Below are positions 8,327 to 64,000 of a stretch of DNA of 64,000 nucleotides, piece after piece. Position numbers and translations under genes: made by a program. The stretch is from Azolla caroliniana (taxonomy: Eukaryota > Plantae > Polypodiophyta), in NCBI GenBank assembly GCA_043228905.1, contig JBHGNT010000012.1:11532001-11596000 (forward strand), written 5' to 3'. The notes under the pieces were generated by a model that was not told the origin of the DNA, did no database searches, and worked only from the letters and a program-made list of their open reading frames with translations. Position 1 is the first letter of the stretch. Every line of letters starts with the position of its first letter.

Positions 8327-8941
8327 TGTTAGGAAACAGGTCCCTCCGGATGGTGAAGACCCGGTGAGAACCGGATGAAGAGTACCCGGCTACGGAGAGC
8401 CGGATGGTGCAGACCCGGTGAGAACTGGATGTCGAGTACCCGACAAGCGCCGGATGATGCAGGCCCGGTGAGGAGTAGTCACCGGATGAAGAGACATATT
8501 CGTAAATATGTTTCTAAGAGTCCATCGTGGCTATATTTGTAAATAGTCGAAAAGTCATATTAGTATAAATATGATTTAGGGCAAACTTTAGTTCTGAGAG
8601 TTGTTGTCATTCTTGTTCTGCGTAAGATCAGAACGCGTAACTGTGTACAAAGAGAGAGAGAGAAACGAAGAGGTTGTTGCCTCTGTTGTAACCGCCGCCT
8701 GTGGCGAAGATAGAAAGCTCAAGGTTGTTGCCTCGGTGCTTTACTGTTATACACTGTAACATAGTGATAGTTTGCAGCCTATGGGCTGCCGTGGTTTTTT
8801 CCCTAGCTTGGGTTTTTTCCACGTAAACATCCTGTGTACTCTTCTCTTCACTGTGTCGTGCATTCATTCCCCATTTTCTGTGTTTTATTCTAAGCTCGGT
8901 TGTGGCCGAGTGTTGTTCATCGGAGCGTGTAGTTCCTGTCA
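8327..8941 (+). repeat. Family A 5' LTR containing about 2.5 copies of the 54-bp satellite unit
   Basis: 8368-8418 reads GAACCGGATGAAGAGTACCCGGCTACGGAGAGCCGGATGGTGCAGACCCGG, near-identical to the array monomer. TATAAAT near 8564. Confidence 0.92.
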
Positions 8942-11141: not shown

Positions 11142-11857
11142 TGTTGAGAGACAATCTCAACATCGGCCGGATCGGCTGAAGAAGCCGAGGACCGGATTGG
11201 TTGGGACCGATCGGTTACGCCGAGTGCGTAAACCGGGAGGTCGTTAGGAAAGATATTCCGTGAGGAATATATTTGGGAGTTAGTGTAGGAGCTCTTTATG
11301 AGCATTGAAGTACTGTCAGTACTTCAGTCAGTCCTTCTAGGACTTGTATAAAAGTGTTCACTGAGCACGTCTTATGTACAGACTGAGCACTATTATTGAA
11401 TATAGTATTTTTTGTGTTTCTCTCTCTGTCTCTCCTGTGTACACCGTGTAAGCTCAAGCTCTCCATTAAACCTGAGTTTCCTCCCTTCTGTTCGGTCTTC
11501 ATACTTGCTTCCGCACGTTTCTTTTTACATGGTATCAGAGTGCGAGGGTTGAGAACCTCTCTGCAGCCGGCACAGCTTGACGAAGAAGAACAAGAACAAC
11601 GATGGATAGAGGCATGGTGAGCTCGCTTCCAACAGAGAAGCTCGACAGAACCAACTACGCGTCTTGGTCCTACAAGATGCACCAGTACCTGCTCGGGCAC
11701 GACTACTGGAGTTATGTCGAAGGAGCTAATGACGCGGTGTCGTGACGATTTTCGGCTACGGTGTGAAACCGAGTGAGACGAATAAACCAAGGATGTGCAA
11801 CATTGCACATGCACTTAGCAAATAAACCTAGCCTAGTGGCACTTGAGTTCATACAGA

Positions 11858-11930
11858 GGGGTGCAAGCAAGGATTGAACCTTGCACCTCTAACATACAAG
11901 ATAATTGCCTTACCACTAGGACAACTATCA
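11858..11930 (-). promoter_or_regulatory. tRNA-derived A-box/B-box module inside the LTR of X (second copy 14730-14802)
   Basis: Minus strand TGTCCTAGTGGTAAGGC (D-arm/A-box-like) ... GCAAGGTTCAATCCTTGC (T-arm/B-box-like) at tRNA spacing. No acceptor stem. Confidence 0.55.
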
Positions 11931-12382
11931 TATAGTGTAGATTGTATGTATTTCCTTTTGATATACAAATTATAGACGAAACTACCATAGAAAACCATGT
12001 GCACAAAACCATGGTTTTAAACCCATGGTTTGTGCATGACATAAGCAAAACCGTGTGCACAAAACCATGGTTTTAGCCCATAGTTTTGTGCATGTCACGA
12101 GCATGGAAAGACCTATAAAAGCCTCTAGTTGGGCTTGTGTAAGGGGGGCTCAATATGTGATATCACCAACACCATTATCATCAATATAATATTTGTCTTT
12201 ATCTTCTTCATATTTTTCTACTTCTCAAGTGTACAATTTTCTTCTTCTCAAGTAAACCATTTTCATTTAATCTTACATTGATCGTCATCTAGCATCGATA
12301 ATTCCGCGATCATCCTCCCCAGTCCAAGACCCCGGTGGTCGCTCGAGTAGCACACGCACGCGCGAATCTTCGCGACATCATT

Positions 12383-12399
12383 TGGTGAACCCGACGTGA
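12383..12399 (+). promoter_or_regulatory. Primer-binding site complementary to the tRNA-Trp(CCA) 3' end
   Basis: TGGTGAACCCGACGTGA is the reverse complement of TCACGTCGGGTTCACCA, the plant cytosolic tRNA-Trp 3' end as I recall it. Confidence 0.8.
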
Positions 12400-12421
12400 A
12401 GAGCAGCAGGGGAGGACGAAG

Positions 12422-13126
12422 ATGGATGGCGAATATCTCATGGAGGCAATGGCAAGAAGGATGATGGAGTTTCTGAGAGAAGAGAAAAGAAGAAATGAAG
12501 CCCAACAAGCCGTCGACAAAGTAGTCGAACGAATGAGCTATTTCAACGGCGCCGATGTCCAAAGTTTCCTAAAAGTCTACAATGCGGAGATGGATTCAAG
12601 AGGTGTGGACAAAGCTATGAGGCTAGAGTACTTTTGTCGGGTGGTGTCTCAACCGATCTTCAAAGATGTAGAAGAGCTTCTAGAAGCTCATGATTCGTGG
12701 TCGACTTTCGAGAAGGCTCTATTGGAGGAATATGGCTATGAGAGACCGAAGGGACAAGATCGACGCAACTTCGACCAATGGGTGGCATCAGCGAAGACCC
12801 ACCAAGGCGCAACACAAGCATTCGTAGACTTCGAGCATCATTTTTCTCAATTGTCGGAGCGGGAACAAAGATTGGTGGGGGTCGATAAGGTCCTTATGTT
12901 CGTCAAGTCAATCGATCGAATGGAAAGGATGACAATCGGCCTCAAACTCGAAGAAGATGACGGTGCAAATGGACTCATCGAGGATTGGAGCAAAGTGGAA
13001 AGTGTATGCCGACTACACGATAAGGGGCAAAGCGAGAATATCGATGACAACAAGACGGCCCATGAGGGACGATCGAAGAGGGACGAGATGCAACAACGCA
13101 CCACCAACAAAAGAAATGAAGCTTAG
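12422..13126 (+). CDS. gag: Gag-like (capsid) protein of element X
   Basis: Intact 234-aa ORF just after the PBS (FNGADVQSFLKVYNAEM...WSTFEKALLEEYG). Homologues at 219-600 and 53140-53710. Confidence 0.7.
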   Translation: MDGEYLMEAMARRMMEFLREEKRRNEAQQAVDKVVERMSYFNGADVQSFLKVYNAEMDSRGVDKAMRLEYFCRVVSQPIFKDVEELLEAHDSWSTFEKALLEEYGYERPKGQDRRNFDQWVASAKTHQGATQAFVDFEHHFSQLSEREQRLVGVDKVLMFVKSIDRMERMTIGLKLEEDDGANGLIEDWSKVESVCRLHDKGQSENIDDNKTAHEGRSKRDEMQQRTTNKRNEA

Positions 13127-14648
13127 AAGGGAGACAAAACCGAGGCGAATGGTGATCGAGGAAGAAGAGACCTCCCAACAAATGCGGGTTAATGAAGTGG
13201 CCGATACAAAGGCTCTAGTTCGGTATGACGGTACCGAGAGAGAAGGTGTGAAACAAGTCACCTTCTTGTCTTACAAAGAAACGACGGCGAAGGAGGAGGC
13301 CGATGACTCGAGGACGGCGAACGCCACTTCGAGGGAGGATAAATGTTTCGGAACACGCATTGTGTACGAAACATCGGGTGATGACGGCGCAAGCATGAGA
13401 AAAGCTTGCATGATCGAGGGAGAAAAAGTGTTTGAGTCTGAAGAGATTGAGGAGGTAGCCATGACAAACGACATCGAGTCGGAGGTGGCTATGGACGAGT
13501 CGACAACGGATAGCCATGTCAAGACTTTCTCCACGATTGTTCCAGAGACTTCGGCGGTTGCACCCGTGTGCCAACGTGAGACCGGAGAGACGGAAGGTGG
13601 TGACGGGAAGACAAAGGCCCAACACAAAGAGGAAGAAGATCGAGGAAGAAAGGATATCCCCACACCTATTCTAGAGACTTCGGCGGTTGTGCACGTGCGC
13701 CAACGTGAGACCGGAGAGACAGAATGTGTGGACAAAAAAGAGGACGACCGGAAGGGCGATGAAGAAGACAAGGTAAATGTAAATGAACGAAGGGATTCCT
13801 TCACACTGGTTCCGGAGACTTCGGCAGTCGAGACCGTGTGTCGACATAAGACCGAAGATAAAGGAGGTGGCGAAGAAGAGACAATATGGCTCGAGGCGAG
13901 CATACACGGAGGGAAGGATATGGCCGACGTGGAGGCCAAGGATGAAGCTGTGGTTGAGTTCGATGGAGAGGTTGCATGCGGGAAGGAAGGAAGAGTCGAG
14001 AACCGGTTGAACCGGAAGACGATCCGGCCGGGATTCCGACCCGAACGAAGGAAGATCCACATGGGAGCCGATCGACCGGGGCCGACCCGGCCGAAACCTG
14101 ATTCGGCGAAAATCGATCGGACGATTCCGATCCAAAAGGGGGCCGACCCAGCCAGAATCAATCGGTCGAGCCCGACTCGGGGAAATGTGAATGCAGACGA
14201 AGGCCAACCAAGCCAAGAAGCGATCGGTGGAGACCGATCCGGACAAGGGCAAACCCGGCCTAATCGGAGATCGACACGAACGATCTACAATACCAAGTTG
14301 AAGACAGTGAGCGTGAGGAGTGGCCAGGAGTCCAATCGAAGGACACGCGCGGTGGACGAAGGAAGAGCGGTCGTATCGACGACATCGTTCGGTAGATCTA
14401 CTACAACCGATCGGGGAAGAAGGTGTGAGCGCCGGATATGGTGGATCGGGTGGCTACGGTGGTTCGGTTGGAAAGATTGCGCATACTCGAAGTGGAAGAC
14501 GAAGTCGACGAGCGTGCAGAAGAACTCGGTTGATCACCGTTGCCAAAGATCTCACCTCTTCACCTTTCTCGGCACATACCGGAGGATGTGCGGGTTTGGT
14601 GGGGGTGGATGTCGTGACGATTTTCGGCTACGGTGTGAAACCGAGTGA
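12957..14648 (+). CDS. Low-complexity E/K/T-rich ORF with internal PETSAV...ETGE repeats; probable frameshifted extension of gag
   Basis: 563-codon stop-free ORF overlapping the gag end. The same repeats occur in element Y (54070-54580). No recognisable enzyme domain. Confidence 0.4.
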   Translation: MTVQMDSSRIGAKWKVYADYTIRGKARISMTTRRPMRDDRRGTRCNNAPPTKEMKLRRETKPRRMVIEEEETSQQMRVNEVADTKALVRYDGTEREGVKQVTFLSYKETTAKEEADDSRTANATSREDKCFGTRIVYETSGDDGASMRKACMIEGEKVFESEEIEEVAMTNDIESEVAMDESTTDSHVKTFSTIVPETSAVAPVCQRETGETEGGDGKTKAQHKEEEDRGRKDIPTPILETSAVVHVRQRETGETECVDKKEDDRKGDEEDKVNVNERRDSFTLVPETSAVETVCRHKTEDKGGGEEETIWLEASIHGGKDMADVEAKDEAVVEFDGEVACGKEGRVENRLNRKTIRPGFRPERRKIHMGADRPGPTRPKPDSAKIDRTIPIQKGADPARINRSSPTRGNVNADEGQPSQEAIGGDRSGQGQTRPNRRSTRTIYNTKLKTVSVRSGQESNRRTRAVDEGRAVVSTTSFGRSTTTDRGRRCERRIWWIGWLRWFGWKDCAYSKWKTKSTSVQKNSVDHRCQRSHLFTFLGTYRRMCGFGGGGCRDDFRLRCETE

Positions 14649-17600
14649 GACGAATAAACCAAGGATGTGCAACATTGCACATGCACTTAGCAAATAAACC
14701 TAGCCTAGTGGCACTTGAGTTCATACAGAGGGGTGCAAGCAAAGATTGAACCTTGCACCTCTAACATACAAGATAATTGCCTTACCACTAGGACAACTAT
14801 CATATAGTGTAGATTGTATGTATTTCCTTTTGATATACAAATTATAGACGAAACTACCATAGAAAACCATGTGCACAAAACCATGGTTTTAAACCCATGG
14901 TTTGTGCATGACATAAGCAAAACCGTGTGCACAAAACCATGGTTTTAGCCCATAGTTTTGTGCATGTCACGAGCATGGAAAGACCTATAAAAGCCTCTAG
15001 TTGGGCTTGTGTAAGGGGGGCTCAATATGTGATATCACCAACACCATTATCATCAATATAATATTTGTCTTTATCTTCTTCATATTTTTCTACTTCTCAA
15101 GTGTACAATTTTCTTCTTCTCAAGTAAACCATTTTCATTTAATCTTACATTGATCGTCATCTAGCGTCGATAATTCCGCGATCATCCTCCCCAGTCCAAG
15201 ACCCCGGTGGTCGCTCGAGTAGCACACGCACGCGCGAATCTTCGCGACAGCGGCACCCGAATCGACACAAAGAGACTTCCCGTCGTGGGAGCAATCGGCG
15301 AGCAGGGTATTGTACTGCTTCGCGTCGTGTGTGGGCGAACAACTATTGAGTTATGTTCGGGATGCAAAGACGCCGAAGGGTGCGTGGGAAATTTTGAAGA
15401 AGATTTTCGCAGCGAGCACCACAGCCAGGAAGCTTCAGCTCCGACAGGAGTTGAGCAACCTACGACAACGCGACTTGTCGGTGGCGGACTATACCTCGAA
15501 GATCAAGGATATCTGCGACTCCCTCGCCTCCATAGAGGTGAACATCGAGGAGAGCGAGATGGTCCAGATCTGTCTCGGAGGTTTGGCGTCGAAGTTCGGA
15601 GAGTTCCGAACGGCTGTGTGTACCCGGTAGAATACACCGTCCTTTTTCGACTTACAGTCGATGCTCCTGGTAGAGGAGAACCACGCGGGTGCATCTACAA
15701 GCGTGCACACCGACAGTAGAATGTTGTACACGGAGGGAGATAGGCCCCATGGACGTGGAGGACGAGGCGAGTCGGCACGCAATGGAGGCGGTCGACGAGA
15801 TCAAGAAAGAAGGCACCGAAGTGTTGCCGACAGCAACTCCGGACCCTCCGGAAACAGGGGGAGTCAAAGCGATGCGAACCGGCAAGGGAAGTCCATCGCG
15901 GAGTGCTGGTACTATGGCAAGAAAGGCCACAGGGAAAGTGAGTGCTAGAAGAAGCGCGGCGATTCGGAGAGAACTGGTTCCGGGAACGGCTCCAGACATA
16001 CCGACAAGGGAAATCGGCAGCGATCGCACTACGCCAAAGACTCCGGGAGAGCCGGAGAAGGGTCTGTCCTCGTGACGAGACCCGAGATCGGACGAGGTGT
16101 GGTACGTAGACTCCGGCACGTCTAACCACATGACGAACCATAAGGAGTGGTTCTCATACCTTGAAAAACCGATACAACCGGGAGTAGTCGCAACAGGAGA
16201 CGACACTCCGCATCCGATCGCGAATGTCGGTGAAGTTCCCCTTAGCCATGTCGGGCAGAAAGGGAAACTCAAGAACGTGTTGCACGTTCCGACAATCACG
16301 AAGAACTTGGTCTCGGTCGGACAGATCATCGACCAAGGGATGGAGGTTCGGTTTACACACCTCGGGTGCTTCATTGAGGAAGAAGGCCGTGTGATTGCGC
16401 AAGGGCACAAAGACGGGAGGATGTTCATCCTCGACTCCACTGACGGCGGCACCGCAATGTTCGTGAAGGGACAAAAGACCGAGTCGGACATCGACTTATG
16501 GCACAAGCGGATAGGCCACGTTAACTACCAACGGCTTCAAGATCTGCAAACGAAACAGGTAGTGTTCGAATTGCCCAAATTTAGTGGCCGAAAGGCACAA
16601 ATTTGTGATGCCTGCCAGCTCGGGAAGCAACACCGACTTCCCTTCCCCAACGAGTGAAACTGGAGCCGGAACAAGCTCGACCTTATACACTCCGATGTAT
16701 GGGGGCCGACACAAAACGTTAGTCTTGGCGGGAGCCGATATTTCATCTCCTTCATCGACGACCACATGTGGCACACGTGGATCTACCTCATTGAGAGGAA
16801 GAGCGATGTCTTCGACTGTTTCCGGGACCTCAAAGGGTTCGTGGAAGCCAAAACGGGACGAAAGATCAAGTGCCTGCGGTCGGATGGCAGAAAAGAGTAC
16901 TTTTCTGGTCAATTCAACGGTTATCTACAACAAATGGGAATTCGCCGCGAATTCAGTTGTAGATACACGCCAGAGCAGAATGGCGTGGCCGAGAGAAAGA
17001 ATCGGTCAGTTGTGGAAGTGGCACGGGCAATGCTGGAGGAGAAGAGCTTGCCCAAGCTCTACTGGGCTGAGGCGGTAAGGACCGCGGTATACATCCTGAA
17101 CCGGATCGGAGACAAAGTGTCGGCGCACGAGCTATATTTCGGAACGAAGCCGAACTTGCGACACTTGAGGGTGTTCGGTAGCATTGCGTATGTGCATGTA
17201 CCGAAGGAGAAAAGGAGGAAGTTAGACGCAAAGGCCGAGAAGTGCATCTTGGTCGGTTACTCGGACGAGTAGAAGGGTTATAAGTGTTATAACCCTCGCA
17301 CCAAACAAGCGCGTGTCAGCCGCGACGTTGTGTTTGACGAGTCCGTGTCCTGGTACCTGCCCCCGACTCGGAACCCCGACTCCAATACGAGTTCTGACGA
17401 TGAGGTCAGCGAGGCTGAGATGCCTCCGGATGAGCCAGAAATCGAGACCTATGAAGAGAGTCCAATTTCACTCCGGTTAAGTGGACCAATTGGACGACTG
17501 AGTCAATACGACAAATCCGATGAAGAGCCGGCGAGTAGTGGAGACTCGGCCGTGCATTCCCCACACAGGAAGCCGAGGAGACGGCTTACGCGCAAAGAGA

Positions 17601-40211: not shown

Positions 40212-40336
40212 CTCCAAAGAAATAACGAAGCTATTAGAAGAGTTCAAGGATGACCAACTAGAGTTCGCACTAGAGCTAGAAGCTTATGAAGCTGAACGAG
40301 TGTAGTTGGAGAAAGAGCACGAAGGAGGAAAGGAAC

Positions 40337-40627
40337 TGTTGGGATCTTGGTCCCTCCGGATGGGATGATGAACGCCCGGTGAGAACCAGATGATGAGTAG
40401 CCGGCAAGGAAGACCCAGTGAGAACCGAATGTTGCAGGCCCGGTGAGAACCTCTCACTGGATGAAGGGACATATATGTAAACATGTTCCAGAGACCCCAC
40501 TAGGGCTATATTTGTAAATAGCCCGAAAGTCATATTAGTATAAATATGACCTAGGGCAAACAGTGTGCATCAATTGTTGTCACTATTTTGTATAGAGTTA
40601 TTGGTGTAACTGTTGTACAAAGAGTAG

Positions 40628-40673
<46 letters not shown>

Positions 40674-40936
40674 TCTCTATTGTAACCGCCACCAGGCGAA
40701 GATTGTGAGGGCGAGGTCGTTGCCTCTGTGTTCCCCTGTTGTATTCTCCTTGCATAGTGAGAGTTGGAGTTTGTGGACTCCCGTGGTTTTTCCCGTTTAG
40801 GGTTTTCCATGTTAACATCCTATGCATTCTCTTCTGTTTGTGTACTTACTTCCATTTCTCATCTTTCTGTGTTTGATTATCATTAAGTGATCTAAGTCTC
40901 GGTTGTGGCCGAAGATTATTCCGCATATTCTCTTCA
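40337..40936 (+). repeat. Solo LTR of Copia family A
   Basis: TGTTGGGATCTTGGTCCCTCCGGATGG...TCTTCA with perfect 5-bp TSD GGAAC. Shares CCCGGTGAGAACC repeats, GGCTATATTTGTAAATAG, TATAAAT and CTCGGTTGTGGCCGA with the 8327 LTR. (GA)n at 40634-40668. Confidence 0.92.
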
Positions 40937-41949
40937 GGAACTAGATCACATTCAACTTCTCGACAGTGAATCAAGCGAACAATCCCAAGACATATCTGAT
41001 AACGCAGCCCCATACCCCCCCCCCCCCCCACTAACATCGCGCCAGCCAAGACCGTCAACGAACATCCAACTATCACTCTCTCAAACGTTGCCACCTTGCC
41101 ACAAGATGCAGAAGCCCACCACGACGAATCATCGCGATTGTTATCTTAGGCGATCCCACACAACAAAGAGATCAGAGACGAAATAGTCGGGGAAACAATG
41201 ATAGCGACGAAGCTGATAACACATATTGCGACCTCACCAAACGCCCCCACCATTGGCAAAAACTAGTCGGCTCAAATGAGCTGAACATTTTACACATTTT
41301 GGACGATGCCTAGTCGGCAAACGAGGTTCAACCGTGCAAGGCACTGTCCCACAGGTGTGCCATGTGTTGGCTAGTCTAGAGGTCCCAAGTGTGAAAAGGC
41401 TAAAGGACAATTACGGGATTGGTGGGGCCGGACAAGGAGTAACTAAATGGCACAAAATATTATTAGTAGTAGCGGTTCACGTTCTAAATGTTACCGCCCA
41501 TGCTTCGTATAAAAAGGGGCATGGGAAGAATGTAAAGGGTGATAAAAAATAATAGTGTATTAAGTCATGCATGCTAATAGAAATCTGATTTGCTTATACT
41601 TTTTCTCTATCTATGTGTCAAGAGTCTTATCTGTATTGAGCGTCTTTAAGTGATCTGTGTATCGTGCACATAACCAATCGGTTGTAGCTAGCTCGGATCC
41701 CAATCTCCACAATCTCCATAATCATACCCGTACGCATGTTAGGTTTTGGTAAGGCAGAGAACTTGTCTATACCATCATCTCCCTACCAAAAGACCTTGAT
41801 CCGGATACCAAAGGAATGAGTATCCAACACCATGTTACCATAAACTGGTAACATGAATGTAAGCCATAGCATAAAAATCCTTTCATAAATACTCTCTTAT
41901 TGTGATGATACTTTCTTCATTCATTTTATAAAAGTGACCTCCGGTCTTT

Positions 41950-49200: not shown

Positions 49201-51357
49201 GATGCGTTCCTGCAAGGTGACCTTGAGGAACAGGTGTACATGGTACACCCCCCGGATTTCACTCTGGAACGAACTCCTCGGCAATATGTTGACTGAAGAA
49301 GTCCCTTTACGGACTGAAGCAAGCCTCGCGTGCCTAGAACGCGAAGATCACGCAACAACTGCGTCGGATGGGCTTCGTCACGTCAAGATCGGACTCTTCC
49401 CTATTCATCCGGAAAGGTCGACTCGGACCGGTTAGTATTTTGCTATATGTTGATGACTTGGTCATCACCGGCGCCGACCTAGGAGAAATCGACCGCGTGA
49501 AGATCCAGCTTGCGGCATCATTCGACATGAAGGATCTGGGGGACCTTCATTACTTCCTCGGGATCGAAGTGATCCGTACCCCCGAAGGCATATTGATCAG
49601 CCAACGTCATTACGTGCTGAGTATGCTCTTCAAATTCGGGATGGCCGACTGTAAGTCCGTCTCGACTCCTCTGGACAGAACCGTCAAGCTTCGTCCCGAT
49701 ACGGGAAAGGTATGTGACCCGACGAGGTTCCGACAAAATGTCGGAAGCCTGATATACTTGACCATCACCCGACGCGACCTCAGTTATCCTGTCGGAGTGA
49801 TCAATCAGTTCATGGCGCGACCTACCGAGGAGCACCTCCAGTGTGCGCAACGCATACTTCGGTATGTCAATGGCACTAAGGACCGGGGACTGCTATATCG
49901 GACCGGTGCAGCCGCGCAATTAGTCGGCTACACTGATGCTGATTGGGCTGGCAACGCCGCTGATCGCCGATCCACATCCGGATACACATTCTCCCTCGGG
50001 AGTGCCGCGATTGCGTGGAGCAGTAAGAAGCAGCCGACAGTTGCATTGTCGAGCACCGAAGCTGAGTACCGAGGAGCGGCCGTCACGACATGGGAAGCCA
50101 TATGGTTGAAGCGGCTACTTAGGGACCTGCAAGAGGAGGTGTCAGATCCGACAACGATCTACTACGACAACCTCAGCAGCATCCAGCTCATGAAAAACCC
50201 TGTTTTCCATGCACGGACCAAGCACATTTAGGTGCACTACCATTTCATCCGTGAGCATGTCCTTTCTGGTGAAGTCGAACTTTAGTACGTTCCAACGGAT
50301 CGGCAGACTGCCGACATCTTCACCAAGCCTCTTGGTCTAGACAAGTTGCGGCAATTCTCAGGTGCGCTCGGAGTGCGTCACCTCGACGTGCCAAACTTGA
50401 GGGGGAGAACAGTCCCGAACGACTAAGCAAGGCAGCAAGAAAGGAGCGGAGACCGCGACACTGAGTTGGTTGACTCGGTTGTCAAGTTGGACTTCGGATC
50501 GGCTGAAGAAGCCGAGGGCGGACCCGCGGAAAAGTCCGGAAGCGGACAGAAGGGGAGCAACCGAAGGAGAGAGCCGAAGCCAACCACGCATGGGGAAGAT
50601 GACGCCACCGAGGGCGAGAAGACCAAAGTCGAGTTGGAGACAGCCAACTCGGACGAGAGCGAAAACCGATCGGAGGTAGCTGAGTCGGTTCAGATGTTTG
50701 ATTCAGATACGCTGAATCAACCGAGGCCCAAGCCGAAGAAAAGGCAGCAGGAGAAGTGTCAACACCGCAACAACAGAAGAGCTGATAAGGGCCACATGAG
50801 CAAACAAGCCGACCGGAAGGGTCGAAGCGCGCGGAGTCAAACAGGCCGTCAACGCGAGCGAGGCGTGAAACCAGGAGGAACGGGAGCTGTGAGCCCGAAG
50901 ATCCCGAAGAGCCTCAAGTTGAGCTTGAGGGGGAGTGTTGAGAGACAAGCTCAATATCGGCCGGATCGGCTGAAGAAGCCGAGGACCGGATCGGTTGGGA
51001 CCGATCGGTTAGGCCGAATGCGTAAACCGTTACGTAGGTAGGGCCGGATCGGTGTGTAAACAGGGAGGCCGTTAGGAAAGATATTCCGTGAGGAATATAT
51101 TTGGGAGTTAGTGTAGGAGCTCTTAATGAGTATTGAAGTACTGTCAGTACTTCGGTCAGTCCTTCTAGGACTTGTATAAAAGTGTTCATTGAACACACAT
51201 ATGGATAGAGTGTGTTGAATATAGTTCTTGTGTTTTTCTCTCTCACTCCCTCTCTGTCTCTCCCGCGTATACTGCGTAAGCTCAAGCTCTCCATTAAACC
51301 TGAGTTTTCTTCCTTCTGTTTGGTCTTCATACTTGCTTCCGCACGCTACTTTTTACA
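49201..51357 (+). mobile_element. Copia family B copy 2 (RT-RNaseH, extension, 3' LTR)
   Basis: AFLQGDL, YVDD, DADWAG, RTKHI. PPT TTGAGGGGGAG at 50925. LTR 50936-51357 is homologous to 11142-11529. Confidence 0.92.
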
Positions 51358-54300
51358 AAGGATGTTTGACACGTTCAGGAGGTTCGACTGAACCTGATAT
51401 AAGCCGGTCGGCTAGATGATTAAGGCTACACGAATAGAATGCAGAACAGAGTCATGAAATTCAGCAAAGGAAGCCTGATTTTGGTTCAAGCTCGGAAGAT
51501 CAACACGTTATATCTTATGCATGCCCAAATACGCCGGGAAGAAGTGAATGTAGCATTTGACATTGTCGGTGAGCTGTGGCACAAGAGACTGTGTCATATG
51601 ACCCAGAAGGGGATGAGAAGAATTGCTGAAGACAACCTCATTCCGGAGGTGAAAGACGTGCAGCTTGAGAAGTGCACCGACTGCTTGGCTGGAAAGCAAA
51701 ACCAAACCTCCTTCCGATCAAAACCATCGGTGAGACGGAATGCACCACTAGAGCTGGTGCATATCGATCTGTGTCAAGTAGACACGAAGTCACATGCTGG
51801 ATCGCAATACTTCGTGATGTTCATTGATGACAATAGCCATAAGTTATGGGTCTCACCGCTAATAAAAGACAAAGGATCAGGTGTTATCCATCTTCAAGGA
51901 GCTTCACACGAGAGTGGAAAGAGAAACCGGCCGGAAGCTGAAGGTGGTTCGAGCAGACAATGGAGGAGAATACTGGGGGCAGTTCAAGGAGTATTTCTAG
52001 TCGAAGGGAATCCGGTTCAAATTGACCGTGCTGACGACGTCGGAACTAAACGTGCTGGCTGAACGGATGAACTGGACCATAATGGAGAGAGTTTGCAGCA
52101 TGCTAGCACATGCCAAGTTAGCCAAGACATTTTGGGCTGAGGCGTTAACGACGGTGACTTACGTGATAAACAGATCACCCTCAGTACCCTTGGACGAAGA
52201 CACGCCGCAAAGATTATGGACCGGTAAGGACACGTCTTACCGACATCTAAAGGTGTTCGGGTGTCTCGCATATGTGCATGTTGCAAACGACAAGAGAGCC
52301 AAACTGGATCTGAAGTCCAGGCCATGCATATTCCTTGGATACAACTATGATGAGTTCATTTACCGGGTGTGGGATCTGGTCTACAAAACGGTGTTCTGGA
52401 GTTGAGACATAGTCTTCATGGAAGACAGGACCATAGCCGACTAGGAGTCGGAGAAGAAGATGATGAACTCTGGATCATCCAATGAAAACCGGCTTGAGGA
52501 CACAAGGACCTACCCGGTTGAAAACCGGATGTTGGCCGGCAACCGGTGTCGTGAAGATTTCCGGCTTTGGTGTGAAACCGGGATGGAATGGGCAAGTCAG
52601 CAATGTGCAACATGTGCACATATATAGTAGGAAAAAAAGTGTATACAATAAGGTGGAGAATTTATCCCACATTGTAATGTCTCTCCCTCCTTGGGCTATA
52701 AAAGGAAGGGAGGGGTCTCTTGTGAAGGTGGTTGCCTATTTTGAGTGAGAGAGGTATACCACTTAGGTCGAGGGTTTCTATTTCGGTTTTAGGGTTTCGT
52801 CCAAGGTTTTACTATTTTTCTTCTTTATCATCTTCTTTACTTTACTTATCCGGTTAGGGTTTTCTTGTAGTCGTTTTGGTGCGGCCTATGCGGCCATGCT
52901 TGTAATCGTTCGCGGAGTCTTAATATAACTTGTTGTGTATCTTGACTCCATCTTTTTTCTTGTTCCATCCATTCTATGTTTATGTCCTATTTTTTCTTCT
53001 CTCCTCTCGAGCTAAGCTTTCATTCCCCCTCTACTCCCTAGTCCAAGACACCCACGGTCCCACCTAAGATCTTACACGTACTCGCAAAATACCACGACAT
53101 CTTTGGTGAACCCGATGTGGAAGGGCGGCAAGGGAGGATGGAGTTGGAAGACGAAGACTTCGTAGAGATGGTGGCCGAAGTGGTGATGGAGTTCGGATGA
53201 GTGACGATGAGACAGGAAGCTATTGAACGAGTGGTAGAAAGAGTCGATCGTTTCAACGGGGACAAAGTCCCATTCTACTTGAAAGCCTACAATGCGGAAA
53301 TGGAGGTGCGAGGCGTAGACAAGGCGTTTAGGTTGGAGTTCTTCTGTCGGTTCATCACCGTCCATATGCACGCTGAATTAAAGGAGCTCCGAGGAGCTCA
53401 TAGTTCGTGGGAGGCCTTCGAAAAGGCGCTCTTGTAGGCATACGGAGGACGGCCAAAGAGCCGAGGACGGCGCGACTTCGACCAGTGGGTTGCATCGGTG
53501 ATGATCCACTGGGGCGCAACGAAGGTGTTCAGGGAGTTCGAGCGGCGCTTTACTCAGCTCCTGGAGCGGGAACAAAGTCTGGTGGGGGTGGACAAAGTCT
53601 TGTTGTTCGTTAGGTCAATCGACCGAGCGGAATGGGAGGCCATCGGAATTGAGCTCGAAGACGACAACGGAGCGAATGGCCTTACCGAGGACTGGTTGGA
53701 AGTCGAATAAGCATGCCAACGGTTGGATGAGGAGCAGTCCATGAAAGGTAATGGGAAGATAACGCATCATCACAACAAGGAGCGGGCACGCGACAAGATC
53801 GGCGAAGCTCGATGTTTAAGCCTTGGTCCGGGAAGCATACGAGGCTCTGAAGGTGACAGTCGACGAAGAAGAGAGATCCGACACGTGGATGGATCCTGGA
53901 GACTCAGAGCTAGTCAGCCATCCAGACAAGGCGGACATGGCCCAAGCAGAGGCCGAAGAATGGTACGACGGTACCACAGGAGAGGGTGCGGAGCAAGACA
54001 CCCTCTCGACTTGCGGAGAAAGACTAGCCGAGGAGGAGGTCGGGAGCGGAGAAGAGCCCTCCACGCGGATTCCGGAGACTTCGATAGTCGATCTTGTGTG
54101 CCGACATAAGACCGGAGAGATGGAAGGAGCCAGCGAGGAGTCCTAGCACGATGCCAACGAAGATGGATGGGAAACGGCCTGCGAGGAGGTCCAGGACGGA
54201 GCCACGGTAGAGAAGGAGGAAACGAGTGTCGGCGGCAAGGCGAGCAACCAAGACTATGACAAGGAGAACGAGGAAGAGGAGGAGGCAAGCGTAATCAAGG

Positions 54301-57300
54301 CTTGCGTAATCGGGGACGGGGTAGCCGCGGACAACGACATCCGGACAGACGTGGCTACGGATATGACAAGTGGTGGTGTCGGGACCTTACCCACACCAAT
54401 TCTAGAGACTCCGGCGGTCGGCCCGAGAGCTGGCGTGAGACCTAGAGTGACGGACAATGGTGGCGGCAAGGCGGGTGAACAAAATGAGAATGAGGAAGAT
54501 TGTAGCGGACGGAGGAGAGATCCCTCGACACCGGGACCAGAGACTTCGGCGGTTGCGTACCAACATAAGACCGGAGAGATGGGCGGTAGCCGTGAGGATG
54601 TGAGCCGACATTTTAACGTCTCTCCCTCCTTGGGCTATACAAGGAAGGGAGGGGTCTCTTGTGAAGGTGGTTGCCTATTTTGAGTGAGAGAGGTATACCA
54701 CTTAGGTCAAGGGTTTCTATTTCGGTTTTAGGGTTTCGTCTAGGTATTTACTATTTTTCTTCTTCATCATCTTCTTTACTTTACTTATCCAGTTAGGGTT
54801 TTCTTGTAGTTGTTTTGGTGCGGCCTATGCAACCATGCTTGTAATCGTTCACGGAATCTTAATATAACTTGTTGTGTATCTTGCTTCCATCTATCTTCTT
54901 GTTCCATCCATTCTATGTTTATGTCCTATTCTTTCTCCTCTCCTCTTGAGCTAAGCTTTCATTCCCGCTCTACTCCCTAGTCCAAGACCCCCATGGTCCC
55001 GCCTAAGATCTTACTCGTACTCACGGAATACCGTGACATCTTTGGTGCCGTGAGTACGTGTAAGATCTTAGGCGGGACCGCGGGCGGGGGTCTTGGACTA
55101 GGGAGTAGAGGGGGAATGGAAGCTTAGCTTGAGAGGAGAGGAGAAAGAATAAGACATAATCATAGAATGGATGCATGCAAGATACACAAACGAGTTATAT
55201 TAAGAAACACCAAACGCTTTACAACCATGGCCGCATAGGTCGAATGAAAACACTATATGGAACCCAAACCGAATAAGTAAAGTAAAGAAGACGATGATGA
55301 AGAAAAATAGTAAAACCCTGGACGAAACCCTAAAACCGAAATAGAAACCCTCGACCTAAGTGGTATACCTCTCTCACTCAAAATAGGCAACCACCTTCAC
55401 AAGAGACCCCTCCCTTCCTTTTATAGCCCAAGGAGGGAGAGACATTACAATGTGGGATAAATTCTCCACCTTATTCTATATAGTATTTTTCCTACTATAC
55501 ATGTGCACATGTTGCACATTGCCAACTTGCCCATTCCATCCTGGTTTCACACCAAAGCCGGAAATCTTCACCACACCAGATGACACTCGACGAACCGACT
55601 GGATACGGAAAAGAAACTAAACCGACCGAAGAAGAAGAAGAAGAAGACAACACCTGAACTAGACAAGATCCTAAATCGAACTCGAATGAGGAACAAACAG
55701 AGGAACCGGTAGTTAGAAACCAAGGACGGAGATATCCTCTCTGAGAGAGAAGAGCCCCCCGGAGATTTCCGGATGTAGAGCATGTGTTGCTAACCGATGA
55801 GGGGGAGCCGAAAAGCTTCGATGAAGCAAAGAGAGACACCCACAGCCACAAGTGGTTGAGTGCCATGCAGGATGAGATGGATTCCATGCATGAGAACCAC
55901 ACATACGATCTGACAGAGTTGCCAAAAGGGAAGAGAGCACTCCGGAATAAGTGGGTGTACAAGCTGAAACCGGGAGACGCCGGAAACCCACCAAGATACA
56001 AAGCCTGGATCGTGGTGAAGGGGTTCCAACAGAAGAGAGGAGTGGATTTCGACGAGATCTTTGCCCCGATAGTAAAGATGACATCCATCCGGACAATATT
56101 GGGGAGAGCGGCAAGCATGAACCTCGAGGAAGTCCTGGTGTGCCGGCTGAAGAAGAGCTTATATGGATTGAGGCAAGCTCCCCGGCAATGGTACCGGAAG
56201 TTCGACTCCTTCATGACCAACTAACGGTACCACAAGACCAAGGTCGATCACTGCGTGTTTGTAAAGAAATTTGATGGAGGAGATTTCCGGATACTCCTCC
56301 TATATTTGGATGATATGTTGATCGTCGGACGAGACCAAGGCAAGATTCGGATGCTGAAGAAGGCTCTGAACCGGACCTTCTCAATGAAAGACTTGGGGCC
56401 AGCAAGACAGATATTGGGAATGCACATCATGCGGGACCGATCGAAGAAATTGTTGTGGTTGTCACAGGAGAAGTATGTGACAAAGGTGCTTCAATGGTTG
56501 AACATGTCAAAGGCGAAACCGATCAGATCGACACTTCCAACAAATTGCAATCCGGAAAAGAAAGCCCAACAACAAAGGCGGAGAAGACGGACATGATGAA
56601 GATACCATATGCCTCTATCGTCGGAAGCTTGATGTACGCGATGGTATGTACCCGGCCGAATATCGGATATGCAGTCGGAGTGGTAGGCCGATTCATGAGA
56701 AATCCCGGAAAAAGGCACTGGAACGCGGTCAAGTGGATATTCTGGTATTAGAAAGGCACCTCAAGTATGTGCCTCCGGTTCGGATATGTCGGCTGATGCA
56801 GATACCAGCCGGTCGACATCCGGGGAGCTGTTTCGTGGCAATCGAGGTTGTAGAAGACAGTTGCGTTGTCAACCATGGAGGCGGAGTACATGGCAATTGT
56901 GGAAGCCGGCAAGGAGATAATTTGAATGAAGGACTTCATCGAAGAGCTAGGGATCCAACGGGAGGAATATCGGCTCTACTGTGACAGTCAAAGTGCCATC
57001 CACCTTGCAAAGAATGTGGCCTACCATCTTGGACGAAACATATCCAGTGGAGGTACCAATGGATCCGGGAGAGAGTAGAAGATCAAGAGTTCGTGCTGAT
57101 GAAGATCCAGATGGCGGAGAATAAGTCAGATATGTTGACCAAGGTGTTAACGACCGATAAGTTGGACGCGTGCCGAAAGTGGATCGGGCTGATGAGACAT
57201 CCCATGCCAAAGTGAAGGGGGAGATTGTTGGGAAGTCGGTCCCTCTGGATGGGATCCGGTCATGAATGAAGACGAACACCCGGTGAGAATAGGAAGAGAA
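51358..57300 (+). mobile_element. Copia family A copy 2 (integrase, RT, RNase H, start of 3' LTR), interrupted by Y
   Basis: 51358-52467 parallels 10038-11141. RT LLTDEGEP, KWVYKLK, LYGLRQAPRQW, YLDD. PPT GAAGGGGGAGA at 57214. LTR start TGTTGGGAAG at 57226. Confidence 0.9.
52547..55575 (+). mobile_element. Element Y: gag-only Trp-primed element ending in an inverted LTR
   Basis: LTR 52547-53099, PBS TGGTGAACCCGATGTG, decayed gag, 5'-truncated LTR about 54608-55038, PBS stub TCTTTGGTG, inverted LTR 55048-55575. Flanks CCGG / CCAG. Confidence 0.85.
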
Positions 57301-57501
57301 TGACAGGAACTACACGCTCCCTTTGCACAACGCTCGGCCACAACCGAGCCTAGAATAATACACAGAAAACAGGGAATGAAACACAACACGATAGAGAGAA
57401 GAGTACACAGCATGTTTACGTGGAAAACCCAAACTCGGGAAAAAACCACGGCAGCCCACAGGCTGCCAACTATCACTATGTTACAGTGTACAATAGTAAA
57501 G
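57301..57501 (-). repeat. Family A LTR 3' end inserted in inverted orientation in the A2 3' LTR
   Basis: TGACAGGAACTACACGCTCC... is the reverse complement of about 8740-8941. Confidence 0.9.
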
Positions 57502-60500
57502 TGTTGGGAGACAGGTCCCTCCGGATGGGAAGGGAGAAGAACAGTGCCGACGAACAATCTCGGGCAAGGCCGAAACCGAACGAGGAGTACCCGGCTACGG
57601 AGAGCCGGATGGTGCAGACCCGGAATGAACCGGATGAGGAGTACCCGGCTTCGGAGAGCCGGATGATACAGACCCGGTATGAACCGGATGAGGAGTACCC
57701 GGCTACGGAGAGCCGGATGGTGCAGACCCGGTATGAACCGGATGAGGAGTACCCGGCTTCGGAGAGCCGGATGATACAGACCCGGTATGAACCGGATGAG
57801 GAGTACCCAGCTACGGAGAGCCGGATGGTGCAGACCCGGTATGAACCGGATGAGGAGTACCCGGCTTCGGAGAGCCGGATGGTGCAGACCCGGTATGAAC
57901 GGGATGAGGAGTACCCGGCTACGGAGAGCCGGATGATACAGACCCGGTATGAACCGGATGAGGAGTACCCGGCTACGGAGAGCCGGATGGTGCAGACCCG
58001 GTATGAACCGGATGAGGAGTACCCGGCTTCGGAGAGTTGGATGATACAGACCCGGTATGAACCGGATGAGGAGTACCCGGCTACGGAGAGCCGGATGGTG
58101 CAGACCCGGTATGAACCGGATGAGGAGTACGCGGCTTCGAAGACCCGGATGATACAGACCTGGTATGAACCGGATGAGGAGTACCCGGCTACGGAGAGCC
58201 GGATGGTGCAGACCCGGTATGAACCGGATGAGGAGTACCCGGATTCGGAGAGCCGGATGATACAGACCCGGTATGAACCGGATGAGGAGTACCCGGCAAC
58301 GGAGAGCCGGATGGTGCAGACCCGGTATGAACCGGATGAGTACCCGGCTTCGGAGAGCCGGAGGATACAGACCCGGTATGAACGGGATGAGGAGTACCCG
58401 GCTACGGAGAGCCGGATGATATAGAGCCGGTATGAACCGGATGAGGAGTACCCGGCTACGGAGAGCCAGATGGTGCAGACCCGGTATGAACCGGATGAGG
58501 AGTACCCGGCTACGGAGAGCCGGATGATACAGACCCGGTATGAACCGGATGAGGAGTACCCGGCTACGGAGAGCCAGATGGTGCAGACCCGGTATGAACC
58601 GGATGAGGAGTACCCGGCTTCGGAGAGTCGGATGATACAGACCCGGTATGAACCGGATGAGGAGTACCAGGCTACGGAGAGCCGGATGGTGCAGACCCGG
58701 TATGAACCGGATGAGGAGTACCCATCTTCGAAGAGCCGGATGATACAGACCCGGTATAAACCGGATGAGGAGTACCCGGCTTCGGAGAGCCGGATGGTGC
58801 AGACCCGGTATGAACCGGATGAGGAGTACCCGGCTACGGAGAGCCGGATGGTGCAGACCCGGTATGAACCGGATGAGGAGTACCCGGCTTCGGAGAGCCG
58901 GATGATACAGACCCGGTATGAACCGGATGAGGAGTACCCGGCTACGGAGAGCCGGATGGTGCAGACCCGGTATGAACCGGATGAGGAGTACCCGGCTTCA
59001 GAGAGCCGGATGATACAGACCCGGTATGAACCGGATGAGTACCCGGCTTCGGAGAGCCGGAGGATACAGACCCGGTATGAACCGGATGAGGAGTACCCGG
59101 CTACGGAGAGCCGGACGATACAGACCCGGTATGAACCGGATGAGGAGTACCCGGCTACGGAGAGCCAGATGGTGCAGACCCGGTATGAACCGGATGAGGA
59201 GTACCCGGCTTCGGAGAGTCGGATGATATAGACCCCGTATGAACCGGATGAGGAGTACCCGGCTACGGAGAGCCGGATAGTGCAGACCCGGTATGAACCG
59301 GATGAGGAGTACCCGGCTTCGGAGAGCCGGATGATACAGACCCGGTATGAACCGGATGAAGAGTACCCGTCTACGGAGATCCGGATGATACATACCCGGT
59401 ATGAACCGGATGAGGAGTACCCGGCTACGGAGAGCCAGATGGTGCAGACCCGGTATGAACCGGATGAGGAGTACCCGGCTTCGGAGAGTCGGATGATACA
59501 GACCCGGTATGAACCGGATGAGGAGTACCCGGCTACGGAGAGCCGGATGGTGCAGACCCGGTATGAACCGGATGAGGAGTACCCATCTTCGAAGAGCCGG
59601 ATGATACAGACCCGGTATGAACCGGATGAAGAGTACCCGTCTACGGAGATCCGGATGATACATACCCGGTATGAACCGGATGAGGAGTACCCGGCTACGG
59701 AGAGCCGGATGGTGCAGACCCGGTATTAACCGGATCAGGTGTACTCGGCTTCGGAGAGTCGGATGATACAGACCCAGTATGAACCGGATGAGGAGTACCC
59801 GGCTACGGAGAGCCGGATCGTGCAGACCCGATATGAACCGGATTAGGAGTACCCGGCTTCGAAGAGCCGGATGATAAAGACCCGGTATGAACCGGATGAG
59901 GAGTACCCGGCTACGGAGAGCCGGATGGTGCAGACCCGGTATGAACCGGATGAGGAGTACCCGGCTTCGGAGAGCCGGATGATACAGACCCGGTATGAAC
60001 CGGATGAGGAGTACCCAGCTATGGAGAGCCGGATGGTGCAGACCCGGTATGAACCGGATGAGTACCCGGCTTCGGAGAGCCGGATGATACAGACCCGGTA
60101 TGAACCGGATGAGGAGTACCCGGCTACGAAGAGCCGGATGGTGCAGACCCAGTATGAACCGGATGAGGAGTACCTGGCTACGGAGACCCGGATGATGCAA
60201 ACCCGGTATGAACCGGATGAGCAGTACTCGGCTTCGGAGAGGCGGATGATACAGACCCGGTATGAACCGGATGAGGAGTACACGGCTACGGAGAGCCGGA
60301 TGGTGCAGACCCGGTATGAACCTAATGAGGAGTACCCGGCTTCGAAGAGCCGGATGCTACAAACCCGGTATGAACCGGATGAGGAGTACCCGGCTTCGGA
60401 GAGCCGGATGATACAGACCCGGTATGAACCGGATGAGGAGTACCCGGCTACGAAGAGCCGGATGGTGCAGACCCAGTATGAACCGGATGAGGAGTACCTG

Positions 60501-63500
60501 GCTACGGAGAGTCGGATGATGCAGACCCGGTATGAACCGGATGAGCAGTACTCGGCATCGGAGAGGCGGATGATACAGACCCGGTATGAACGGGATGAGG
60601 AGTACCCGGCTACGGAGAGCCGGATGGTGCAGACCCGGTATGAACCTAATGAGGAGTACCTGGTTTCGAAGAGCCGGATGATACAAACCCGGTATGAACC
60701 GGATGAGGAGTACCCGGCTTCGGAGAGCCGGATGATACAGACCCGATATGAACCGTATGAGGAGTACCCGGCTACGGAGAGCCAGATGGTGCAGACCCGG
60801 TATGAACCGGATGAGGAGTACCCGGCTTCGAAGAGCCGGATGATACAGACGCGGTATGAACCGGATGAGGAGTACCCGTCTACGGAGAGCCGGATGGTGC
60901 AGACCCGGTATGAACCGGATGAGGAGTACCCGGCTTCGGAGAGCCGGATGATACAGACCCGGTATGAACCGGATGAGGAGTACCCGGCTTCGGAGAGCCG
61001 GATGATACAGACCCGGTATGAACCGGATGAGGAGTACCCGGCTACGGAGAGCCGGATGGTGCAGACCCGGTATAAACCGGATGAGGAGTACCCGGCTTCG
61101 GAGAGCCGGATGATACAGACCCGGTATGAACCGGATGAGGAGTACCCGGCTACGGAGAGCCGGATGGTGCAGACCCGGTATGAACAGGATGAAGAGTACC
61201 CGGCTTCGGAGAGCCGGATGGTGCAGACCCGGTATGAACCGGATGAGGAGTACCCGGCTACGGAGAGCCGGATGGTGCAGACCCGGTATGAACTGGATGA
61301 AGAGTACCCGGCTTCGGAGAGCCGGATGGTGCAGACCCGGTATGAACCGGATGAGGAGTACCCGGCTACGGAGAGCCGGATGGTGCAGACCCGGTATGAA
61401 CCGGATGAGGAGTACCCGGCTTCGGAGAGTCGGATGCTACAGACCCGGTATGAACCGGATGAGGAGTACCCGGCTACGGAGAGCCGGATGGTGCAAACCC
61501 GGTATGAACCGGATGAGGAGTACGCGGCTTCGAAGAGCCGGATGATACAGACCTGGTATGAACCGGATGAGGAGTACCCGGCTACGGAGAGCCGGATGGT
61601 GCAGACCCGGTATGAACCGGATGAGGAGTACCCGGCTTCGGAGAGTCGGATGATACAGACCCAGTATGAACCGGATGAGGAGTACCCGGCTACGGAGAGC
61701 CGGATGGTGCAGACCCGATATGAACCGGATGAGGAGTACCCGGCTTCGGAGAGCCGGATGATACAGACCCGGTATGAACCGGATGAAGAGTACCCGTCTA
61801 CGGAGATCCGGATGATACATACCCGGTATGAACCGGATGAGGAGTACCCGGCTACGGAGAGCCGGATGGTGCAGACCCGGTATGAACCGGATGAGGTGTA
61901 CTCGGCTTCGGAGAGTCGGATGATACAGACCGAGTATGAACCGGATGAGGAGTACCCGGCTACGGAGAGCCGGATGGTGCAGACCCGGTATGAACCGGAT
62001 GAGGAGTACCCGACTTCGAAGAGCCGGATGATACAGACCCAGTATGAACCGGATGAGGAGTACCCGGCTACGGAGAGCCGGATGGTGCAGACCCGGTATG
62101 AACCGGATGAGGAGTACCCGGCTTCGGAGAGCCGGATGATAAAGACCCGGTATGAACCGGATCAGGAGTACCCAGCTACGGAGAGCCGGATGGTGCAGAC
62201 CCGGTATGAACCGGATGAGTACCCGGCTTCGGAGAGCCGGATGATACAGACCCGGTATGAACCGGATGAGGAGTACCCGGCTACGGAGAGCCGGATGGTG
62301 CAGACCCGGTATGAACCGGATGAGGAGTACCTGGCTACGGAGAGCCGGATGGTGCAGACCCGGTATGAACCGGATGAGGAGTACTCGGCTTCGGAGAGCC
62401 GGATGATACAGACCCGGTATGAACCGGATGAGGAGTACCCGGCTACGGAGAGCCGGATGGTGCAGACCCGGTATGAACCTAATGAGGAGTACCCGGCTTC
62501 GGAGAGCCGGATCCTACAGACCCGGTATGAACCGGATGAGGAGTACCCGGCTTCGGAGAGCCGGATGATACAGACCCGGTATGAACCGGATGAGGAGTAC
62601 CCGGCTACGGAGAGCCGGATGGTGCTGACCCGGTATGAACCGGATGAGGAGTACCCGGCTTCGGAGAGCCTGATGATACAGACCCGGTATGAACTGGATG
62701 AGGAGTACCCGTCTACGGAGATCCGGGTGATACATACCCGGTATGAACCGGATGAGGAGTACCCGGCTACGGAGAGCCGGATGGTGCAGACCCGGTATGA
62801 ACCGGATGAGGAGTACCCGGCTTCGGAGAGCCGGATGATACAGACCCAGTATGAACCGGATGAGGAGTACCCGGCTACGGAGAGCCGGATGGTGCAGACC
62901 CGGTATGAACCGGATGAGGAGTACTCGGCTTCGGAGAGCCGGATGATACAGACCCGGTATGAACCGGATGAGGAGTACCCGGCTACGGAGAGCCGGATGG
63001 TGCAGACCCGGTATGAACCTAATGAGGAGTACCCGGCTTCGGAGAGCCGGATCCTACAGACCCGGTATGAACCGGATGAGGAGTACCCGGCTTCGGAGAG
63101 CCGGATGATACAGACCCGGTATGAACCGGATGAGGAGTACCCGGCTACGGAGAGCCGGATGGTGCTGACCCGGTATGAACCGGATGAGGAGTACCCGGCT
63201 TCGGAGAGCCTGATGATACAGACCCGGTATGAACTGGATGAGGAGTACCCGTCTACGGAGATCCGGGTGATACATACCCGGTATGAACCGGATGAGGAGT
63301 ACCCGGCTACGGAGAGCCGGATGGTGCAGACCCGGTATGAACCGGATGAGGAGTACCCGGCTTCGGAGAGCCGGATGATACAGACCCAGTATGAACCGGA
63401 TGAGGAGTACCCGGCTACGGAGAGCCGGATGGTGCAGACCCGGTATGAACCGGATGAGGAGTACCCGGCTTCGGAGAGCCGGATGATACAGACCCGGTAT

Positions 63501-64000
63501 GAACCGGATGAAGAGTACCCGTCTACGGAGATCCGGATGATACATACCCGGTATGAACCGGATGAGGAGTACCCGGCTACGGAGAGCCGGATGGTGCAGA
63601 CCCGGTATGAACCGGATGAGGTGTACTCGGCTTCGGAGAGTCGGATGATACAGACCCAGTATGAACCGGATGAGGAGTACCCGGCTACGGAGAGCCGGAT
63701 GGTGCAGACCCGGTATGAACCGGATGAGGAGTACCCGGCTTCGAAGAGCCGGATGATACAGACCCGGTATGAACCGGATGAGGAGTACCCGCGTACGGAG
63801 AGCCGGATGGTGCAGACCCGGTATGAACCGGATGAGGAGTACCCGGCTTCGGAGAGCCGGATGATACAGACCCGGTATGAACCGGATGAGGAGTACCCAG
63901 CTACGGAGAGCCGGATGGTGCAGACCCGGTATGAACCGGATGAGTACCCGGCTTCGGAGAGCCGGATGATACAGACCCGGTATGAACCGGATGAGGAGTA
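57502..64000 (+). mobile_element. Third family A LTR whose U3 repeat region is expanded into the array (runs off the window)
   Basis: Starts TGTTGGGAGACAGGTCCCTCCGGATGG, compare TGTTAGGAAACAGGTCCCTCCGGATGG at 8327. Confidence 0.85.
57573..64000 (+). repeat. 54-bp tandem (satellite) array, about 119 monomers visible, continuing past the window end
   Basis: Consensus GAACCGGATGAGGAGTACCCGGCT(A/T)CGGAGAGCCGGATG(GTG/ATA)CAGACCCGGTAT, with mostly alternating variants and occasional 51-bp units. Confidence 0.99.

Follow-up and report, generated by a model that had tools for sequence, protein, structure and literature searches.

A 54-bp tandem array that likely expanded from a short U3 repeat of a Copia long terminal repeat in the fern Azolla caroliniana

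The origin of satellite DNA from tandem repeats inside long terminal repeat (LTR) retrotransposons is already well documented, and the locus analyzed here adds to this known mechanism. It is a tandem array of 54-bp units lying within an LTR of the Ty1/Copia superfamily, at the end of a 64,000-nucleotide stretch of DNA from Azolla caroliniana (NCBI GenBank assembly GCA_043228905.1, contig JBHGNT010000012.1, positions 11,532,001 to 11,596,000 of the forward strand), which we call the window and whose own numbering is used throughout. The closest described systems are those of Lathyrus sativus, in which nine satellites derive from tandem repeats in the 3' untranslated region (3'UTR) of Ogre retrotransposons and for which expansion and capture are both discussed (Vondrak et al. 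2020, PMC7004042). The Ogre-derived satellites FabTR-51 to -58 resemble the Azolla array in that short sub-repeats are present in many copies of the element and the same monomer also forms a long array (PMC7004042). They differ from it in position, superfamily and host, since the Ogre repeats belong to the 3'UTR of a Ty3/gypsy element of a legume, whereas the array presented here belongs to the U3 region of a Ty1/Copia LTR in a fern genome. Furthermore, the Ogre study relied on genome-wide distributions of array length and on fluorescence in situ hybridization (PMC7004042), whereas the present analysis concerns one expanded array.

Other satellites are tied to LTRs themselves. In hop, the LTR of SaazCRM1 harbors the centromeric satellite SaazCEN (PMC12371157), and maize has tandem repeats that derive from CRM (Sharma et al. 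2013, PMC3648361). As in Azolla, the satellite monomer of these systems is found within an LTR; however, they involve centromere-targeting Ty3/gypsy chromoviruses with CENH3 data, while the Azolla array belongs to a Copia element. Among the examples given by Sharma et al. (PMC3648361) are a rodent satellite that resembles the U3 of a retrovirus and, as retrotransposon-derived repeats, the Sobo satellite of Solanum bulbocastanum and the centromere repeats of potato. The latter two are, like the present array, homologous to LTRs but, as they are cited in that paper, have monomers that are kilobases long and combine LTR with other DNA, unlike the array described here, which amplifies a 54-bp U3 sub-repeat alone. 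What sets the present case apart is the Copia superfamily, the position of the sub-repeat in U3, and the host. Satellite origins are as a rule reconstructed long after the fact. This locus preserves the parent repeat (1.5–4 units), a native left junction, and a seemingly young array, at least 119 units long and with its dimer newly fixed, so that all of these can be set against one another at single-base resolution.

The array was detected by Tandem Repeats Finder (TRF) as one array with a period of 54, 119.3 copies, 90% matches and a score of 10439 (Table 1). Because it runs off the end of the window, unit count and length are lower bounds, namely at least 119 units and more than 6.4 kb, and the more than 119 copies announced in a preliminary description of this DNA are real within that limit. 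Anchoring on the unit start delimits 120 units, of which 114 measure 54 bp and five 51 bp, the last one being incomplete. Three positions of the unit (24, 39, and 41) separate a type A (A, G, G; n = 51) from a type B (T, A, A; n = 43). The two types mostly alternate, so that the repeat is a 108-bp dimer with irregularities and not the simple 54-mer array that had first been described. Between-unit identity is raised at lags of 2 and 5 units, and the mean distance of a unit from its own consensus amounts to 0.7 bases for type A and 1.6 bases for type B, interior type-A units lying 1.3% from the type-A consensus. Half of the substitutions among array units (88/176) are G>A or C>T.

At a larger scale, the longest exact internal repeat spans 592 bp (62333–62924, identical to 62873–63464), with an offset of 540 bp, which corresponds to 10 units, and is the most recent internal duplication of the array. 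The second longest measures 213 bp, with an offset of 1725. The array is therefore composed of individually recognisable units together with a few recent duplications of multi-unit blocks. Its left edge stands apart, as unit 1 is a type-A unit with three private changes and carries the sole GGAATG unit junction within the array, and unit 2 is already of type B. The array is GC-rich, with four CCGG sites in every unit, and the single-stranded DNA fold of the dimer is better than that of shuffled sequences (z = -3.6) because of these four self-complementary sites per unit. At most, this folding would hint at a contribution of slipped structures to expansion, and we attach no functional claim to it.

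Table 1. Coordinates of the array, of the LTRs around it, and of the LTR copies compared with it (window numbering; L001–L005 are outside contigs)
Feature	Coordinates	Strand	Basis or remark
Tandem array, 54-bp unit, at least 119 units, A/B dimer	57574..64000	+	TRF; monomer segmentation and typing
First unit of the array, native unit 1 of the LTR	57574..57627	+	In register with unit 1 of L001
Most recent internal duplication	62333..63464	+	592 bp exact, offset 540 bp
5' head (72 bp) of the array-bearing Copia LTR, sub-type A2	57502..57573	+	Head also 72 bp in L003, L004, and L005, with 4–7 differences
TAAAG, 5-bp candidate for the target site of the LTR with the array, within the inverted LTR	57497..57501	.	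Read from sequence; second copy would fall beyond the window
3' part (R-U5, 201 bp) of an older LTR of family A, inverted, with a clean end (...CCTGTCA) at 57301	57301..57501	-	87.7% identical to 8739–8941
Head (75 bp) of the 3' LTR belonging to a third Copia, resembles the 40337 sub-type, broken at 57300 by the inverted LTR	57226..57300	+	
Polypurine tract AAGTGAAGGGGGAG of the upstream third Copia	57210..57223	+	Tract also found before the LTRs of L002 and L005
Reference family-A 5' LTR, TGTTAGG...CCTGTCA, about 2.5 units at 8346–8472, TATAAATA at 8564–8571	8327..8941	+	TRF
Solo LTR of a related sub-type, degenerate units, GGAAC target duplication (40332–40336, 40937–40941)	40337..40936	+	68% identical to LTR-A
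LTR in L001, 4 units			
LTR in L002, 3 units			3' LTR, polypurine tract before it
LTR in L003, 3 units			
LTR in L004, 2 units			
LTR in L005, 1.5 units			3' LTR, polypurine tract before it

The parentage of the monomer was examined in the LTRs of the window. The LTR that carries the array is on the plus strand and begins at 57502 with TGTTGGG (TGTTGGGAGACAGGTCCCTCCGGATGG), so that unit 1 starts after a head of 72 bp, close to the 70 bp reported earlier. The reference LTR at 8327 provides the identity of the family, which we call family A. It is followed at 8945–8955 by a primer-binding site (TGGTATCAGAG) of the type complementary to tRNA-iMet, as in Copia, and by open reading frames (ORFs) with, in order, the domains Retrotran_gag_2, zf-CCHC, Pol_BBD, gag_pre-integrs, rve, and SH3_retrovirus, this copy ending before its reverse transcriptase. 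From its TG...CA ends, primer-binding site, polypurine tract, and gag and domain order, family A is identified as a Ty1/Copia LTR retrotransposon family. In the 8327 LTR, the units lie about 90–220 bp upstream of the TATA box and consequently belong to U3, and the array type-A consensus is identical at 51 of 54 positions to the full unit at 8369–8422. The near identity of the monomer to a unit of this LTR, and the count of about 2.5 units there, had been correctly noted, as had the presence of degenerate units (about 1.5–2) at the same position of the solo LTR at 40337, flanked by GGAAC on both sides. The 8327 LTR is nevertheless not the plain sister that it had been taken for, but a different sub-type without the 45-bp head segment of the array-bearing LTR.

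Copies with a head like that at 57502 were found outside the window, using as bait the ORF of the array, which is open since 54 is a multiple of 3. The bait matched ORFs called on LTRs in five contigs (L001–L005) from the ENA metagenome assemblies ERZ27227309-313. All five carry such a head, and from the LTR start through the units they are up to 91.8% identical to the window. After the units, each of them resumes with the LTR tail (CACCGGATGAAGAGACATATTC..., GGCTATATTTGTAAATAG, TATAAATATGA), which includes the TATA box, the landmarks of the full tail being CACCGGATGAAGAGACATATTCGTAAATATG ... GGCTATATTTGTAAATAG ... TATAAATATGA ... CCTGTCA. In a joint alignment, units 1–4 of the array are in register with the four units of L001. 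Type A accounts for 12 of the 13 full units in the six non-expanded LTRs, with 1–7 differences from the array type-A consensus, while exact type B is seen only in the array. Partial type-B states do exist in unit 2 of L001 (T, G, A) and in unit 1 of L004 (A, A, G). The unit junction GGTATG is common to the array, L002, L004, and L005, and GGTGAG is found in L001, L003, and the 8327 LTR. Across LTR copies, the number of units forms the series degenerate, 1.5, 2, 2.5, 3, 3, 4, and at least 119, and the other copies have LTR lengths of 0.5–0.7 kb. Five outside copies with the same head, 1.5–4 units, and the same register thus uphold the proposed derivation of the monomer from the U3 repeat of a Copia LTR, and the comparison of these sequences strongly supports the view that the array monomer descends from a variable short U3 repeat of this LTR family. 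With a monomer homologous to an LTR sub-repeat, and with short arrays in element copies beside one much longer array, the locus agrees with retrotransposon-derived satellite DNA as understood by Vondrak et al. 2020.

Growth of the array in place, which the preliminary description had put forward, appears likely on this comparison because the left junction is the native junction between head and unit 1 and because the edge unit matches the LTR head in its degree of divergence. Divergence from relatives is about 5% for the LTR head and for unit 1, as opposed to the 1.3% that separates interior type-A units from their consensus, and a diverged head and first unit beside a uniform interior fit growth and homogenisation after insertion, the edge unit having stayed un-homogenised. 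The block duplications point to unequal exchange at the DNA level, and the array dimer seems to be derived from the first two units and to have become fixed. Taken as a whole, we regard it as probable that a U3 repeat expanded at one integrated LTR copy, giving an array that probably has no function.

The steps can be envisaged as follows. The small variation between LTR copies (1.5–4 units) would probably go back to reverse transcription, through template switching or slippage, an origin already put forward for the 3'UTR repeats of Ogre. The carrier, either a 5' or a solo LTR, would have inserted into an older LTR lying in inverted orientation, and its block of units would have grown after integration. 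The large expansion may have proceeded through unequal (sister-chromatid) exchange or replication slippage; the pattern of the units suggests a first phase in the 54/108-bp register, in which the A/B dimer would have been fixed, and a later phase of multi-unit block duplication of 270, 540, and 1725 bp. If the LTR resumes at the right junction, the locus would offer a datable example of Copia U3 expansion in the fern lineage, where satellite origins are little described.

Several points weigh against this interpretation. The array extends past the window, so that neither its right end nor an LTR tail following it is in view. The length of the array and its 592-bp exact duplication rest on the assembly and not on the read level. 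Low divergence within the array can reflect homogenisation instead of youth, and an exchange between a pre-existing array and the homologous units of the LTR would give an identical left junction. In addition, the best public runs (two organisms, several studies) contain 0.38–0.43 of the sampled 31-mers of 57301–57800. Of all 31-mers in this stretch, about 0.34 are consensus array words and only 0.20 are common to the LTR copies compared, which thus explain less than the runs contain; array-type words may hence be multi-copy elsewhere. Such words are multi-copy in independent samples, but the locus alone, with at least 43 type-B units, could account for this. These run data are assembled Logan contigs (about 80–150 bp, from short-read, low-coverage runs) and give neither copy number nor length information; apparent joins in them between the LTR head and later units reflect the ambiguous register of a tandem repeat and were disregarded.

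The first alternative that follows from these points is that the A/B satellite pre-existed as a larger LTR-derived array elsewhere and reached the locus by ectopic exchange or gene conversion with the U3 units of a normal LTR copy, so that LTR sequence would be confined to the left edge. We consider this unlikely. An exchange within homologous units does account for the in-register junction, exact type-B units are missing from the six other LTR copies examined, and the skim runs of two organisms seem to contain most consensus array words, the type-B letter T at 57759 being present in all four public runs compared. However, unit 1 is diverged and native-looking, and unit 2 is of type B, as expected if units 1 and 2 seeded the dimer; moreover, LTRs do harbor partial type-B states, as listed above. 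Furthermore, none of the searches, weak tests as they are, returned another long array. A HMMER search of 1.84 billion representative proteins returned, as high-identity matches, short LTR-borne arrays only; the minus-frame 400-amino-acid ORF of the array, which matches only arrays of about 12 or more units, had no match, and two exact-pattern scans of JGI metagenome contigs (unit junction and unit core) were blank. Such searches see called ORFs or short-read assemblies, which do not assemble satellites, and their blanks are weak evidence.

Still less probable, in our view, is that the array is real but owes its length or internal order to an assembly artefact, by over-expansion or mis-joining. 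The independent evidence does come from assembled short-read contigs and not from reads, and one exact duplication of 592 bp is present; yet apart from this block, the longest exact internal repeat is that of 213 bp, and the many private changes of the monomers, the deamination-biased spectrum, and the irregular spacing of the 51-bp variants speak for a resolved natural array, not a stuttered consensus. We give very little credence to expansion before integration, by repeated template switching in the RNA or cDNA of the element and copying into both LTRs of a giant-LTR element. Small changes in unit number, such as those between LTR copies (1.5–4), most probably do have this origin, judging from the analogous case of Macas et al. 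2009 (cited in PMC7004042). However, an LTR of more than 6.9 kb is far outside the size of every other copy, divergence is much lower among interior units than in the LTR head, and the block duplications indicate exchange at the DNA level.

A more ambitious proposal, which we hold only tentatively and as rather doubtful, is that the locus is the birthplace of a new satellite family, in which a U3 enhancer-like repeat was freed from the size constraint of the element, acquired a new A/B dimer that has not been found in its parent LTRs, and at present spreads or grows as a satellite in its own right. If this proposal is true, the parent, intermediate states, and product are all readable in one genome.

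Within the element, the units may act as U3 enhancer modules. The U3 region of Tnt1, a Copia element of tobacco, carries tandem boxes that are variable short repeats upstream of the TATA box and are shown enhancers; they are not known to form arrays of kilobases. The 54-bp unit occupies an analogous position in its Copia LTR, without sequence relation to the Tnt1 boxes; the comparison goes no further than analogy, and an enhancer role of the unit would be hypothetical. The array itself is probably functionless heterochromatin. It decays mainly by C>T and G>A changes and sits in a nest of dead retrotransposons, and such surroundings are not specific to centromeres. The idea of the preliminary description that the array might seed a (peri)centromeric satellite is purely conjectural.

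A coding gene in the array was considered and rejected, as four of the six consensus frames are open for the trivial reason that the unit length, 54, is divisible by 3, and the sole protein relatives are the ORFs called on LTRs, which are artefactual and lie on repeat DNA. The recorded products of two of these ORFs, L001 1262–1759 (P0001) and L003 150–374 (P0006), are not reproduced under the bacterial code, and the translation of P0001 agrees with the record only if an in-frame TGA is read as W (tryptophan). No match to tRNA genes or Rfam families was found in or beside the array.

The left flank of the array-bearing LTR gives its integration history. Position 57502 is identified as a true LTR terminus because a polypurine tract precedes the terminus in other copies and because the inverted LTR that is interrupted here continues normally elsewhere. 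Indeed, polypurine-type sequence precedes the public contigs that match the LTR head, and a polypurine tract is found before the LTR in L002 and L005. Such a tract is absent before 57502, and the array-bearing LTR is for this reason a 5' or solo LTR. The TAAAG next to it had been named as the possible target-site duplication of a solo LTR; the bases left of 57502 are not host DNA but the inverted R-U5 of an older family-A LTR, in which TAAAG therefore lies. This inverted LTR is broken at 57501 by the array-bearing LTR, and public contigs run past 57501 with CACCGAGGCAACAACCTTGAGC, which are the normal next bases of the LTR. Further upstream, a coding (pol) remnant before 57210 aligns just after the RVT_2 domain of the Copia polyprotein, and its 54 amino acids have no Pfam match. 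The simplest reading of these sequences would be two successive integrations, first of the inverted element into an older 3' LTR and then of the array-bearing element or solo LTR into the inverted LTR. Three LTR ends are indeed found within 350 bp (57226–57573), namely a plus-strand 3' LTR head, an inverted R-U5, and the head of the array-bearing LTR. A recurrent fold-back structure at 57226–57573 is a less favoured alternative to double nested integration, nesting being preferred because of the two clean termini.

Several minor observations concern the same repeats. At the first-unit junction (57624–57626), the majority of the contig depth in run X1 (organism A) falls on GGAATG, and GGTGAG predominates in the three runs of organism B, a pattern suggesting that the GGAATG variant of the first unit is present in many LTR copies of organism A. 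Downstream of the TATA box, an (AG)n microsatellite provides this LTR family with another site of variable length, with about 20 repeats at 40629–40668, fewer at 8650–8665, and about 17 in L001 (1867–1900). The LTR in L001 is inserted beside an AT-rich tandem repeat (about 140–1030), whose period is about 360 bp and which has no relation to the 54-bp unit.

Two further features of the window involve Copia copies away from the array. At the point where the family-A copy from 8327 ceases to match its relatives sits a 3.5-kb element (11738–15249) with 640-bp direct repeats that are 99.7% identical (11738–12377 and 14610–15249); its ORF of 563 amino acids (12957–14648) has no Pfam match, and it looks like a young, non-standard LTR element. 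Finally, the Copia copies at 10038–11529 and 50936–52469 are about 80% identical in permuted order, 10038–11142 corresponding to 51358–52469 and the subsequent 11142–11529 to the preceding 50936–51357, which reflects a rearrangement or a tandem duplication in one copy.

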